Sequence record: NC_019407.1
Reading direction: 5' to 3' (one strand)
Length of the DNA stretch: 64,000 nt
This document shows positions 8,130 through 62,579 of this stretch, one piece after another. Each line of letters begins with the position of its first letter. The stretch's first letter is position 1. The translations under genes and the position numbers were made by a program. The notes below the pieces were generated by a model. The model worked only from the letters and a program-made list of their open reading frames with translations, did no database searches and was not told the DNA's origin.

Positions 8130-8401
8130 TGAACACCTTCTTCCTCCGGCAGACCAAACGGGATGAGCAGGGTCGACGCTACTTTGAGTTCGTCGATCCT
8201 GACCTGACCCAGCGCCTCTATGTCCGCAAGCCGCCGGACGACTGGTCCGAGGGCTTCCCGATCGTCCTGGAGGACTTCGTCGATGGCAAGCCCGCCGGCT
8301 CCATCATCTGCCCGGCCGGGAAGAAGCGGGGGCACGGCTTCGCGGCCTTCTTCAAGGCCAACCCCAAGGATTTCCGCAAGCTCAAGAAAGGTCGCCTATG
8401 A
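8129..8401 (+). CDS. hypothetical protein
   Basis: TGATG overlap chain. Confidence 0.75.
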   Translation: MNTFFLRQTKRDEQGRRYFEFVDPDLTQRLYVRKPPDDWSEGFPIVLEDFVDGKPAGSIICPAGKKRGHGFAAFFKANPKDFRKLKKGRL

Positions 8402-8655
8402 GGATTCCCCAGCCCGTCGAGTTCACCGTGGCCGACCTCATCGCCCACCTCGCGACCCTGCCCCAGGACGCCAAGGTCGGCGTGCGCGGCGGGTTCGGGG
8501 GCTTCCGGCCGCTCGACGAGATCGCCCCGATCGAACTCGTCACCTTCTACGGCGAGACCGACGTCGACCGCATGACGCTGGCGACCGCCGACCCCATCGC
8601 CATCAACTGGAAGGGCAAGCGCGGCGAGCCCTTCACGGCCATCATTCTCGACTAG
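8398..8655 (+). CDS. hypothetical protein
   Basis: ATGA overlap; TVADLIAHLATLPQD motif. Confidence 0.78.
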   Translation: MRIPQPVEFTVADLIAHLATLPQDAKVGVRGGFGGFRPLDEIAPIELVTFYGETDVDRMTLATADPIAINWKGKRGEPFTAIILD

Positions 8656-46464: not shown

Positions 46465-46474
46465 AGGACCCCCG

Positions 46475-46864
46475 ATGCGCAAACTCTCCCTCTACCAACT
46501 GGCCTGCTTGGCGGTGGTGAAGATTTCGACCACCATGGCGAACGAGCCCCATTCGGGCGGCCCAGGCTTTTGCACCTTTGAGCGTCTCCCCCAGTCCAGG
46601 TTCTGGGGCTTCTTCCGCGACGGTCAGCCCCTGATGATACGGCAAGATCGCGAGTTCTCCTACCCGTCGATCACCATCAGCCGTGGCCTCTTCGATCCCA
46701 CCCTCTTCCCCCTCGTGAGTGTCAACATGCTCCGGAACGATGACGGATATCACGCGGTCCTCGAACGCCTCGGGGAATGGGACAGCGATCGCTACCAGAT
46801 CATCCCGCCGCCCAATGGGCATCTGACGCTGTCCCGCAAAAGCGGCCTATGTCGCGAACCGTGA
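46475..46864 (+). CDS. hypothetical protein
   Basis: SD AAGGA. Confidence 0.68.
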   Translation: MRKLSLYQLACLAVVKISTTMANEPHSGGPGFCTFERLPQSRFWGFFRDGQPLMIRQDREFSYPSITISRGLFDPTLFPLVSVNMLRNDDGYHAVLERLGEWDSDRYQIIPPPNGHLTLSRKSGLCREP

Positions 46865-46876
46865 CCGTCATGACGC

Positions 46877-46905
46877 TTGACACGCCCGCAGGGCCGCGCT
46901 AACCA
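46877..46905 (+). promoter_or_regulatory. sigma70-type promoter
   Basis: TTGACA-N17-TAACCA. Confidence 0.65.
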
Positions 46906-46924
46906 TTTTCCTTAACGCAACCCA

Positions 46925-47038
46925 TACGAAAATCCTGGTCCAGGGCGCCGCTGAACAGGCTCCCCGGCCGCGCGAAGCCCCGGACCCCAAAAGGGTGTCG
47001 CCCGAGGGCGCCGTAGGCGGACGCCAAATTTTTTCGTA
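46925..47038 (+). ncRNA. candidate structured 5' leader RNA
   Basis: Closing stem TACGAAAA/TTTTCGTA enclosing several short GC hairpins (ACCC-CAAAA-GGGT, CGCC-CGAG-GGCG). Confidence 0.4.
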
Positions 47039-47057
47039 AGAATGAGGAAATACATCC

Positions 47058-48179
47058 ATGCCCCGTGGTCCGCTGGTCGAGAAGTACGTCAAGGGCAAGC
47101 TCTACAGCCAGCGCCAGTTCCGCCGGCTCATCATCGACACCCTGCGGGCCATCCTCGATCTGCCCGGCTACGAGAAGGGCGCGCGCGCCCGCGATATCGC
47201 CGACAAGTTCGGCGATCCCGCCTGGGTCGAGGCCGAGAACCTGCGGCTGATCGCCGTCACCCTGAACAACCTCAAGACCCAGGGGCTGGTCAAGCAGATC
47301 GAGCGCGGGCTCTACAAGGTCAACGAGGCCAAGGTCGATCTGGGCCTGGACCAGATGGAGCAGACCGAGCAGACCATCGCCGAGGTCCTGCGGGCCGAAG
47401 GGGGCTACGCCAAGCGCCGGGTGATCGACCGCGAGCACGACGCCGACAGCCAGTCGACCGACGCCAAGGCCGGCGACATCCAGCGCACCCTCACCCGCGT
47501 GCTGATGAACAGCCAACGAATCCAGAAGGCCTACGGGGGGATGGTCTACGCGTTCTACAACCTCCCCCAGGCCGAATTGTCCCTCCTGCCCCAGATGGGG
47601 AAGTGGCTCCACCTCCAGTCGGCCGCCGCCACCCGCATGCTGACCGGCCAACCCTCCCACGAGGTCTACGGCCTGATCGAGAAAGCCACCCGCCTCCAGT
47701 ACCGCCACATCGGGGCGGTCTTCAAGTTCGTGATCGACCACATCGACGAGGACTTCGCCGACGCCGCGCGCGGCTTTGAGCCCCTGCACGAGGCGATGGC
47801 CGAATTCAACGACGCCTTCTCGGACGTCAACGCCGGCGCCCGGAACAAGATCGAGGACCGGTTCGGCCCCGAAGGCGAAGACCACCGCCAGATGCGCGAG
47901 GCCGGCAAGACCTACACCGAGATCGACGACGCGCGCGAAGCGGCCTTGCGCGCCTACGACGCCGAAGCCCCGCTGCGGCTGATCGACCTCTTCTGCGAGG
48001 GGAACCCCCAGGCCCACGAGCGCGCGCCGCTCTCTTTCTACGAGGCGTTCGCCGACTGGGCGATGCTAGACGCGGCCCAACTCAGCCGGGGCATCCTCGT
48101 CGCCGACTTCACCCGCGCCAAGCGGATCAAGAAGCTCGACGACCGGGAAGACGGCCCGCTGCCCGGCTATGAGGGCTGA
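47058..48179 (+). CDS. putative DNA-binding protein with N-terminal winged-helix domain(s)
   Basis: ARARDIADKF...VTLNNLKTQGLVKQIERGLYKV; SD GAGGA. Confidence 0.78.
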   Translation: MPRGPLVEKYVKGKLYSQRQFRRLIIDTLRAILDLPGYEKGARARDIADKFGDPAWVEAENLRLIAVTLNNLKTQGLVKQIERGLYKVNEAKVDLGLDQMEQTEQTIAEVLRAEGGYAKRRVIDREHDADSQSTDAKAGDIQRTLTRVLMNSQRIQKAYGGMVYAFYNLPQAELSLLPQMGKWLHLQSAAATRMLTGQPSHEVYGLIEKATRLQYRHIGAVFKFVIDHIDEDFADAARGFEPLHEAMAEFNDAFSDVNAGARNKIEDRFGPEGEDHRQMREAGKTYTEIDDAREAALRAYDAEAPLRLIDLFCEGNPQAHERAPLSFYEAFADWAMLDAAQLSRGILVADFTRAKRIKKLDDREDGPLPGYEG

Positions 48180-48224
48180 TCGGCTGGAGGCCCAAAAGGG
48201 CTGGCCGCTCTGGGTTTGTCAACC

Positions 48225-48485
48225 AAAGCCCTACTCCTCTATGGTCCATAAAGGTACACATATTAAATACATTCTTAGTTTACTCTGTATATGTAAACCT
48301 CTCCCTATACTCTCTATACCCTCTAAAAGCTAACCTAATTAAATACATAGTTAGTAATATGTGTGTCTTTCTACCATTTTACTACCCATTTATTTATTAT
48401 AGTTAGTTTTTCTCCTATAGTGTAGGGTAGAGAAGAGAAGAAAGGATGAAAAGTGGACTATCTACTAAATGAATAGATAATAATC
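48225..48485. other. AT-rich island (origin-like)
   Basis: Hand count of 52 G+C in 180 nt (about 29 percent) over 48241-48420, against a GC-rich background; ATTAAATACAT x2, ATAGTTAGT x2, ACACATATTA/TAATATGTGT inverted repeat. Confidence 0.7.
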
Positions 48486-48774
48486 CCTGCCGGGCAGACC
48501 TCGAAATTGGCGTCGAGCAAATCCCGAGCAAATCCTGGTCGCCTCGCCGCCTCGCCGAGGGGATCGACACGGTATGCAGGACCCGGAGGGAGAGCGGAGC
48601 GTGTCCAGGCCGTGTCGGCGAACCCGTCGATCGTCGACCACCTGTCCCGCCCCACCCGTCGACCGTCCTGCCCGTCAACCGTCCTGCCGAGAAACGACCC
48701 GTCATCCAACACGGCGTCCAGGTCCCGGAGGGCAAGAGCCCGATAGGGCGGGTTCGGGCCGTGTCGGCGGGGAG

Positions 48775-48809
48775 TTGACAGTCGTTGATCACGACGCTAG
48801 ACGTCGTGA
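48775..48809 (+). promoter_or_regulatory. promoter with a palindrome centred on the -10
   Basis: TTGACA-N17-TAGACG; TCACGACG-CTAGA-CGTCGTGA. Confidence 0.7.
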
Positions 48810-48831
48810 ATCTTGACATACGCCCGTCTGC

Positions 48832-49596
48832 ATGAGAGACGTGGTTAACGAGATGGGCTGCTCCAAGGCCCCTCGGGAGCCACCCATGCCGACCCCCACC
48901 ACCCTCCGCTCGACCTCGCCGTCCGATCCACGCCCCACCGCCATCGACCCTGACGTCCTGGCCCTGGCGATCGGCAAGGTCCTGCCCGACATCCTGGGCT
49001 GGGCGCGTCTGCGCCAGCCGGGCTTTGGCGAGGCCGATGTCCGCCATGCGGTGGTCGAGGCGCTGCACATCGCCGGCCTGGACGCCTTCCGCCTCGGCGT
49101 GGTCCTGGCCTCGAAGTTCAACTGGTCGGTCGACTACAGCCTCGTGCGCCTGCTCGACAGCGTCATCGAGGCCCTGCCGACCGCCTATCGGGCGGTGACC
49201 GGCCGCTGGGTCGCCCGCACCGGCATCCGCTTTCCGGCCAAGGAAGGCGACACCATCGAGTTCTTCGACGCGGCCGGTCGCCGCCGCGTCGGCAAGGTGG
49301 TCGGGGTCTCGGGCCTGACCGCCACGGCCTATGTCCAGCCCGCCGTCGGCACCGAGTTCACCGACCCGCCGATCGAGATCGCCGCCGAGGCGGTCGCCGC
49401 CAACGTCACCCAGAAGCGCTACCAGCCCGAGCACCCGATCCTGGGCGCACGCTACGATGACGCCCCGAAACTTGGGGCTCTGGCCGAGGCCGAACGCGCC
49501 CGCCGCACTGACGCGGCGGCTTCGCCGAGAACGCCGGCGCCCCACCCGCACCTGACCGACTTCCGCCCGGACCCTGACGGGCCGGCCATCGCCTGA
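48832..49596 (+). CDS. hypothetical protein
   Basis: 254 aa ORF; the exact start is uncertain. Confidence 0.72.
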   Translation: MRDVVNEMGCSKAPREPPMPTPTTLRSTSPSDPRPTAIDPDVLALAIGKVLPDILGWARLRQPGFGEADVRHAVVEALHIAGLDAFRLGVVLASKFNWSVDYSLVRLLDSVIEALPTAYRAVTGRWVARTGIRFPAKEGDTIEFFDAAGRRRVGKVVGVSGLTATAYVQPAVGTEFTDPPIEIAAEAVAANVTQKRYQPEHPILGARYDDAPKLGALAEAERARRTDAAASPRTPAPHPHLTDFRPDPDGPAIA

Positions 49597-61795: not shown

Positions 61796-62365
61796 ATGAC
61801 CGACTCCGCCAAGATCACCGGCGCGCTCGCGCTACTCGCCGTCGCGGCCGATAATCTCCGCCAAGGCCCGGCCATGTCCAAAGCCGCCGACAACGTCACC
61901 AACGTCTGTAACTACGCCCTGACGCGCGCGGCCATGCTCAAGGCCGCCGACCAAATCGGCGAGGCGCTGGAGGCGCTGGGCGCCCTGCAAGCGGGCGGCT
62001 ATGTGATCGCCCGCCGCCGCGACGTTTTCACCGATGCGGGCGAGAAGCTGGGCGACCTGTTGGCGGCGCTTTATGACGCCGTCCCGAACTACGCCGTAAG
62101 ATCGCAGCGCCTCGCCGACGCCCTGGCCCCGGCGCGAAATTACGTCTATCAGCCCCGGTTCCGGGTCAAGCTGGACGCCGCGCCCGGCGCGCTTTTGACC
62201 GACTGCGACACGGGCGCAACGGTCTATTTCCAGCCGGGCGACGACGCCGACGCCTTCCGGGCCGAATTCGCCCCGTGGGTTCACGCCGCCAACGTGACGG
62301 GCGACGGCGCGGCCCTGGCCTCGATGATGAACCCGACCGCCGAAGAGTATTTCAGCCCCGCCTAA
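61796..62365 (+). CDS. hypothetical protein
   Basis: Start moved to MTDSAK after AAGGAGG. Confidence 0.78.
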   Translation: MTDSAKITGALALLAVAADNLRQGPAMSKAADNVTNVCNYALTRAAMLKAADQIGEALEALGALQAGGYVIARRRDVFTDAGEKLGDLLAALYDAVPNYAVRSQRLADALAPARNYVYQPRFRVKLDAAPGALLTDCDTGATVYFQPGDDADAFRAEFAPWVHAANVTGDGAALASMMNPTAEEYFSPA

Positions 62366-62475
62366 GTCATCATTCCTACCGTCTATGACTTGTCACCGGC
62401 CGAAGTCTTACCCGGTGACAGTCTGGGCAAGTAAAGCTCACTCTGGATTTTATGACTTAGCGCAAAGGATTGAAA

Positions 62476-62550
62476 TTGCTCGAAAAATTCCTAGAAGCTC
62501 ACAAAGTCGTTTTCTGGCTGCTCTTGCTGGCCTGTTTGTGGCGCTTTTAA
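62476..62550 (+). CDS. candidate 24-aa hydrophobic peptide
   Basis: TTG start 6 nt after AAAGGA; MLEKFLEAHKVVFWLLLLACLWRF; atypical AT-rich codons. Confidence 0.35.
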   Translation: MLEKFLEAHKVVFWLLLLACLWRF

Positions 62551-62579
62551 CGGTTTGTTAACCCCTGGCCCTCTAGGGT
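62547..62579 (+). promoter_or_regulatory. CtrA-box promoter P6
   Basis: TTAA-N7-TTAA-N12-TAGGGT. Confidence 0.8.

Follow-up and report, generated by a model that had tools for sequence, protein, structure and literature searches.

The stretch of DNA analyzed here (64,000 nucleotides, hereafter the window) is the right third of the genome of Caulobacter phage CcrMagneto (NC_019407.1, 218,929 bp), with which it shares 100% identity, so that 154,929 has to be added to a window position to obtain the record position. Magneto, a phiCbK-like siphophage, belongs to the Dolichocephalovirinae (Shapirovirus) and has ~10-kb direct terminal repeats. The feature under study comprises gene gp321 (47058-48179, plus strand) and the 707-bp gap that separates it from gp322. 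Within this gap lies an AT-rich island (48230-48485, no strand assigned) filled with repeats, and an earlier note, made by reading the letters alone, had interpreted the pair as the phage replication origin and a possible initiator. We found that the island is unique in the genome, that the architecture of its repeat units is conserved among related phages, and that gene and island are inherited together; gp321 most likely binds the units.

The guanine-plus-cytosine (GC) content of the window is 66.4% and that of the genome 66%; no tRNA was detected in the window. For the GC and skew profiles the whole 218,929-bp genome was reassembled from stretches of the record. The GC content of the island is 28.9% over 48241-48420, in line with the about 29% counted by hand in the earlier note, and 30.9% over 48230-48485, a value reached by no other such stretch of the genome. 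The island is the sole 150-bp stretch with less than 44% GC in the 218,929 bp, its minimum being 27%, ~8.5 standard deviations under the mean. Hence, the low-GC scan of the entire genome showed that the island is real and occurs once, and it is the most easily melted site of the genome. The next-lowest stretch (44% GC; window 62362-62567, also record 8308-8513) is located close to the terminal repeat's inner end and is hence found twice.

All the short repeats that had been listed before were recovered at their positions: the direct repeats ATTAAATACAT (48262 and 48338) and ATAGTTAGT (48347 and 48399), and the inverted pairs ACACATATTA (48256) with TAATATGTGT (48355) and GTTTAC (48278) with GTAAAC (48293). 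The GC skew changes from ~-0.7 (48260-48360) to +0.7 (48400-48480), which confirms the pyrimidine-to-purine strand switch, with the flip near 48420. An exact direct repeat of 11 nt was matched in 1.4% of the island shuffles; for an inverted repeat of 10 nt this figure was 15%, and therefore the latter is not significant alone. Short repeats by themselves are weak evidence, and become convincing only within three alignable units and with their conservation in other phages.

As judged from a three-way alignment, in which the three units align with one another, the short repeats belong to three larger composite units, each ~60-77 bp long, two in direct and one in inverted orientation. Each unit carries a C-rich box (C-box, CCCTAC..CTATAG) followed by a ~30-bp AT box with an inner dyad. 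Unit 1 (48226-48300, plus strand) has the C-box CCCTACTCCTCTATGG at 48229-48244 and then the AT box at 48250-48279, and the direct repeat family to which it belongs (D1) has a 76-bp spacing. Unit 2 (48299-48376, plus strand), delimited by repeat search and alignment, has a doubled C-box (48301-48323) and then an AT box (48326-48355) whose inner dyad is CTAAC, 15 nt, GTTAG. Unit 3 (48368-48440) is an inverted copy on the minus strand, recognized by the inverted pairs I1 and I6 and by alignment; its AT box (48375-48411) forms with that of unit 2 an imperfect palindrome with 37-nt arms, and its C-box, read on the plus strand, is the G-box CCTATAGTGTAGGGTAGAG (48414-48432), with a run of purines after it. 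The strand switch arises because the C-box of unit 3 shows on the plus strand as this G-box plus purines, so that a single inverted unit would account together for the palindrome, for the switch and for the better-than-random folding of the island, which in Magneto exceeded that of shuffles on both strands (z = -1.95 and -3.27). At the right border of the island there is a GC palindrome, CTGCCGGGCAG (48486-48498), which would form a terminator-like hairpin on the minus strand; Rogue keeps a palindrome at this border by means of a compensating insertion, and at the right border of the Colossus island there is an equivalent minus-strand hairpin with a T run. The unit box occurs in the Magneto genome only in the island, with no second occurrence, and hence a phage-wide promoter class was rejected as an explanation for the box. 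A small coding open reading frame within the island was also rejected, since the period of the repeats cannot be divided by three and no codon-wise conservation was observed.

The open reading frame at 47058-48179 has a coding-type GC content at third codon positions (0.94) and encodes the 373-amino-acid protein CcrMagneto_gp321, annotated as hypothetical. No family was found for it in Pfam or NCBIfam; it matches phrog_10876, of unknown function. A library-wide profile search yielded 110 relatives, and 63 of them were used for an AlphaFold2 model (predicted local distance difference test score, pLDDT, 93.8; predicted template modelling score, pTM, 0.85). The model shows two winged-helix domains (residues ~16-96 and ~97-175), not the single one of the earlier note, which had correctly placed a winged-helix protein of this size directly before the island, and a helical C-terminal domain (181-363). 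With VIA-align each winged helix gave Z scores of 8-8.8 to winged-helix domains, a generic likeness only: the matches of the first were of IdeR, IclR and MarR types, linker histone H1 and the MCM C-terminus, those of the second were of forkhead types, and multi-winged-helix proteins such as RPC62 were also among the structure matches. Most of the domains matched belong to proteins that bind DNA. A profile search of the PDB gave weak winged-helix matches only, and Foldseek (PDB and BFVD), VIA-align and a protein atlas gave nothing past generic winged-helix domains. No Rep, ParB or terminase relative stands out among the fold matches, no Rep family was matched in a Pfam scan of the 63 homologues, and a six-frame scan of the genome with PF01051 (Rep_3) detected nothing. 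As modelled, the two winged-helix domains are a fold shared with Rep initiators, with no kinship between the proteins.

Homologues of gp321 were found across the subfamily, with identities down to 24%. The order gp321 homologue, repeat island, packaging genes was found in 12 further named Caulobacter and Brevundimonas phages, and the gene plus island are present in Swift, Karma, phiCbK, Rogue, BL10, Ccr5, Bajun, Colossus, PW, BL9, Bambus and Kabachok. The pair was also found in four metagenome contigs with distant homologues (L019, L020, L026 and L027). The islands of Swift and Karma are identical to that of Magneto or nearly so, that of phiCbK is near-identical with scattered changes, and that of Rogue has diverged yet is AT-rich. 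In Rogue, BL10, Ccr5, Bajun, Colossus, PW, BL9, Bambus and Kabachok a gap of 565-1006 bp follows the homologue, and each of these nine gaps holds an AT island (minimum 26-38% GC), then a gp322-like gene and a resolvase, with TerS and TerL coming next wherever the fetched flank was long enough. Searches for gp321 homologues on 72,556 plasmids and in GTDB genome contigs found none, and a scan of viral contigs returned only phages that were already known.

Repeats (direct, inverted or both) were observed in all nine of these further lineages. Direct repeats recur every ~74-79 bp, in two to five copies, in BL10, Ccr5, Colossus, BL9, Bambus and Kabachok, the last with an additional single repeat step of 48 bp, and long inverted pairs of 30-47 nt are present in Ccr5, Bajun, Colossus, BL9, Bambus and Kabachok. 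Bajun has the inverted pair only; in Rogue there are just an inverted pair of 12 nt and one short direct repeat, whose two copies lie 95 bp apart. A common motif at the island end, TCCTACT..GGGGGTATAGAG (the G-box end), was found in 13/13 island-bearing lineages compared. The C-box is common to all, and the AT boxes are lineage-specific and often hold perfect dyads, e.g., the 12-bp palindrome CTTATTAATAAG in the AT box of BL10. Dyads of this kind are typical of sites for dimeric DNA-binding proteins.

Gene and site have also moved together. When Ccr5 is compared with Magneto, the flanks are 95-97% identical, and the segment from the gp321 leader to the island end is BL10-like (78.6% identity), with the right recombination break at ~48500, at the island border and GC palindrome. 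This cassette pattern indicates that gene and site were swapped as one unit; the co-transfer could partly reflect mere adjacency. The identity of gp321 to the Magneto protein is 56% in Rogue, 37% in BL10 and 35% in Ccr5, the corresponding values for gp322 to TerS being 63-100%, so that on these comparisons gp321 is the fastest-evolving protein of the conserved block. The first winged helix (52%) and a C-terminal segment (301-346) are the conserved parts of gp321, and the second winged helix (36%) and the middle of the helical domain are the variable ones, a division that might mirror, as we infer, that of the units into conserved and variable boxes. Judged from the sequences, the exchange in Ccr5 plus the fast divergence is the pattern expected of a protein and its cognate site. 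We consider it quite probable that the island is a functional site bound by gp321.

Upstream of gp321 there is a promoter-like site on the plus strand, read from the sequence (46877-46905; TTGACAC, 14 nt, GCTAACCA), whose TTGACA and TAACC are invariant in Magneto, phiCbK, Rogue, BL10 and Ccr5; it presumably fits the Caulobacter sigma-73 pattern. A GC-rich leader follows on the same strand (46915-47040, ~125 nt); its end, immediately ahead of the ribosome site, consists of a hairpin-like stretch plus a T run, on account of which it may be an attenuator or a translational operator. The leader is better conserved than gp321 itself, with long invariant blocks in lineages whose proteins are 35-56% identical; its consensus fold has few covarying pairs, and hence its structure is unproven. 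The slot between gp319 and this leader (46465-46865) is variable: it holds gp320 (129 amino acids) in Magneto and another gene, of 113 amino acids, in phiCbK and Swift, and gp320 is absent from Karma and Ccr5.

On the other side of the island, a GC-rich spacer starts with two tandem copies of the 11-mer CGAGCAAATCC (48514-48535, plus strand), detected by repeat search and kept in the Shapirovirus group and Ccr5. The variable part of the spacer (48536-48772, no strand assigned) contains two copies of a ~45-nt segment (GGWCCCGGAGGG ... GGCCGTGTCGGCG), from 48579 and 48721, and the stretch between them is hypervariable, with insertions and deletions among Magneto, Karma and phiCbK. The spacer motif GGWCCCGGAGGG bears only a loose likeness to a 24-bp array located after terL, and was not enriched. 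Two promoter-like sites on the plus strand precede gp322, their function being deduced from sequence: P1 (48775-48803; TTGACAG, 14 nt, GCTAGACG) and P2 (48813-48837; TTGACAT, 10 nt, GCATGAGA). A GAATC (a GANTC methylation site, 48808-48812) abuts the TTGACA (-35 element) of P2. Between Magneto and Rogue the P1/P2 region hardly changes; Brevundimonas phage Bajun and contigs L019 and L020 share the combination of GANTC and TTGACA, and the TTGACA promoter core was also found in Colossus, PW, Bambus, Kabachok, BL9 and contig L026. Since the phage encodes a GcrA homologue (PMC3556154), the region at 48775-48837 may be a late promoter of the GcrA/CcrM type. Gene gp322 (48886-49596, plus strand) is the first of a conserved block of gp322, a RuvC-like resolvase, TerS and TerL, and the full order downstream is gp322, gp323, the RuvC-like resolvase, two small genes, TerS and an intein-bearing TerL. 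The left end of the terminal repeat, annotated as a repeat_region, maps to record position 208984 (window 54055), inside terL and ~5.6 kb right of the island (PMC3556154), and the 24-bp array, which is separate and conserved, adjoins this genome end. Terminator-like hairpins on the minus strand at the right island border of Magneto and Colossus, together with an annotated terminator after the Colossus gene, suggest that the site may be shielded from incoming transcription. In some lineages, terminator-like elements point outwards on both sides.

Of the claim that this module is the origin and its initiator, one part stands: a DNA-binding protein and an adjacent repeat array form one module, conserved in 12 named phages and four metagenome contigs and swapped jointly in Ccr5. 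The remaining part, that replication starts here, is a putative reading: a replicon-type origin is the likeliest role of the module, at somewhat less than even odds. Mohammadi and Ely (2025) reported that the Dolichocephalovirinae persist as stably inherited replicating episomes and postulated an unidentified origin (PMC12195562), and the module is thus a candidate for it. When the genome was scanned in six frames, neither a DnaB-type helicase nor a Toprim_2 primase or Prim-Pol was detected, which makes an initiator that recruits the host proteins plausible; gp129, annotated as a 'putative DNA helicase', is an SNF2-type protein. The phiCbK genome paper mapped the replication gene module and mentioned no origin, AT-rich region or this gene (PMC3556154). 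In a full-text literature search that combined these phages with origin and AT-rich terms the element was undescribed, although most subscription papers were outside its scope and an earlier mention is possible.

Several observations weigh against an origin at this place. A GC-skew analysis had been proposed as a check, and both the GC skew and the skew at codon position 3 of the rebuilt genome follow gene direction only, with no switch and no origin signal at the island. The sole skew step, near 200 kb, is opposite in sign to what the usual rule predicts for an origin: the codon-3 GC skew of plus-strand genes is -0.14 to -0.21 at 160-200 kb, -0.25 to -0.34 at 200-219 kb and -0.21 to -0.31 at 1-80 kb, and this step (window ~45000) more likely reflects a change in gene class or codon bias than replication. 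DnaA, CtrA, IHF and GANTC motifs were not enriched in 13 islands when compared with shuffles. Furthermore, gp321 does not belong to Rep_3 and no solved initiator is prominent among its fold matches, the units of 74-79 bp are 3-4 times the length of classical iterons, the resolvase and terminase block is next to the module in all island-bearing lineages for which the flank suffices, and the polymerase and helicase genes are ~90-120 kb away. Contigs from RNA libraries (four RNA sequencing, RNA-seq, runs of phiCbK infection) cross the island, which may therefore be transcribed, although such contigs cannot show transcript, strand or ends and DNA carry-over is possible. Two metagenome contigs carry gp321 homologues without an AT island (L018:6001-7038, P0007; L024:8001-9026, P0008, on a 279-kb contig); both lie in tight gene arrays, with no terminase in the 6-8 kb of fetched flank, and the family possibly includes members with another role. 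As for the AT-rich unwinding element of the earlier note, the island is the most easily melted site, but its AT-richness is largely within the repeated boxes rather than in a distinct unwinding element; this is clearest in Bambus and Kabachok, whose islands have a minimum of merely 34-38% GC.

The alternative that survives best, though we judge it unlikely, is a regulatory switch for the packaging operon, in which gp321 would be a transcription factor and the island an operator or enhancer array, or an insulator that sets the genes upstream apart from the late genes gp322, resolvase, TerS and TerL. The conserved tandem promoters of the packaging block are always separated from gp321 by the island, no kind of bacterial regulator is commoner than a winged-helix protein with a dyad operator (and the fold matches of gp321 include IdeR, IclR and MarR), and the codon-3 skew step at ~200 kb suggests a change of gene class. 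However, depending on the phage, the next gene starts 200 to 683 bp beyond the island, across the variable spacer, and the promoters just ahead of that gene shift with it, hence there is no fixed phasing; the promoters are near-invariant while island and gp321 diverge, and Ccr5 works with a foreign gp321 and island and native promoters. Three to six units of 60-77 bp exceed the needs of a promoter-proximal operator, and a unique AT island is not needed for regulation.

More doubtful still is a DNA maturation or packaging site, at which concatemers would be processed or the terminase loaded, with gp321 as an accessory recognition protein. Conservation of the synteny with resolvase, TerS and TerL equals that of the link to gp321, bent repeat arrays are typical of pac and cos sites, and a single genomic occurrence fits a one-per-genome signal; but the mapped left genome end lies at the distance given above, inside terL, with its own conserved array beside it, and TerS has a DNA-binding part of its own and phrog matches to small terminase subunits. 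That the units are genes for small structured RNAs, or phage-specific promoters like the starts of single-subunit polymerases (TATAG and then purines), is improbable. Folding beats shuffles in Magneto, Ccr5, Bajun and BL9, the RNA-library contigs cover the island, and by eye the end motif resembles the start region of T7 or SP6. Nevertheless, Rogue and BL10 show no excess folding and lineages differ in their z-scores, the inverted unit accounts for the folding signal, Rfam gave no match at the gathering threshold and only a chance hairpin in E-value mode, the box is unused elsewhere in the genome, and the contigs, for the reasons given, cannot prove a transcript; no T7-type RNA polymerase was matched in the genome, but that search was silent in all control genomes and shows little. 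A centromere-like partition site for the episome, with gp321 as centromere-binding protein, is very improbable: the repeats do lie directly downstream of the gene for a DNA-binding protein, as in sopC and parS, and the subfamily is reported to be stably inherited as episomes (PMC12195562), but a ParA-type ATPase (AAA_31, PF13614) was absent from the genome scan, a control search being positive in 14/14 control genomes, gp321 lacks ParB, KorB or ribbon-helix-helix features, and none of the plasmids searched carries a homologue.

In the explanation that we favour, the island would be a cis-acting site on which a nucleoprotein complex assembles. The protein gp321 most likely binds the units through both winged-helix domains, the first, at a guess, reading the conserved box and the variable second one the variable AT box. 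If the module is a replicon-type origin, bound gp321 would distort and open the one site in the genome where DNA melts easily, while the host helicase and primase would be recruited by its helical C-terminal domain. Such an origin could serve lytic replication, episomal persistence, or both. We put forward only as a doubtful possibility the wider proposal that gp321 represents a new family of initiators, made up of two winged helices and a helical domain for recruitment, that read unusually long composite iterons of 74-79 bp and that, with the island, it constitutes a plasmid-like replicon for Dolichocephalovirinae episomes in Caulobacter, Brevundimonas and other soil bacteria.

Phages of the phiCbK type are standard tools of Caulobacter cell-cycle research. 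No other non-coding site of the genome is at once unique, easily melted, rich in repeats and deeply conserved, and this one is accompanied by a fast-evolving DNA-binding protein; the module offers a concrete candidate for the replication start of these phages. Should it be the origin, it would provide a new initiator family, an unusual repeat design and a replicon for Caulobacter vectors; should it act in packaging or late transcription, it would still be an undescribed control site common to a whole phage subfamily.

Among known systems, the module shares with T4 oriF and oriG and with the T7 primary origin a stretch that is AT-rich and opens easily, located in a phage with a family A DNA polymerase of its own. 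However, those origins consist of a promoter plus an AT-rich unwinding element, and in Magneto only a weak sigma-70-like match (9/12) reads into the island; nothing in those origins corresponds to the repeat units or to the binding protein beside them. As in P1 repA-incA, F sopB-sopC and P1 parB-parS, a repeat array lies right downstream of the gene for its (in our case presumed) binding protein, and there is a link to plasmid-like maintenance; unlike those loci, the module has no ParA partner or ParB-type domain, and has composite units with one inverted copy. With lambda cosB (read by Nu1 and IHF) and SPP1 pacL/pacR it has in common a unique repeat-bearing site near the terminase genes and a winged-helix protein as probable reader, but the island is ~5.6 kb away from the genome end, TerS is separate, and another repeat array is found at that end.

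The module resembles, in its layout, an initiator plus iterons, with an unrelated protein and unusually long composite units, as far as the sequences indicate. It differs from iteron replicons in that gp321 has no sequence kinship with their initiators and has an extra helical domain of ~190 amino acids, the units measure 74-79 bp as against 17-22 bp, neither DnaA nor IHF sites were found, and the Magneto site lies after the gene and before the packaging genes, its origin role being putative. In common with lambda O/ori-lambda, SPP1 G38P/oriL and the plasmid initiators RepE, pi and RepA (Rep_3), an initiator-like gene lies beside direct repeats and easily melted AT-rich DNA; like the Rep_3 initiators, each of whose winged helices reads half a repeat, gp321 has two winged-helix domains; and, as in iteron replicons, direct repeats are accompanied by an inverted copy, and protein and site evolve fast as a pair.

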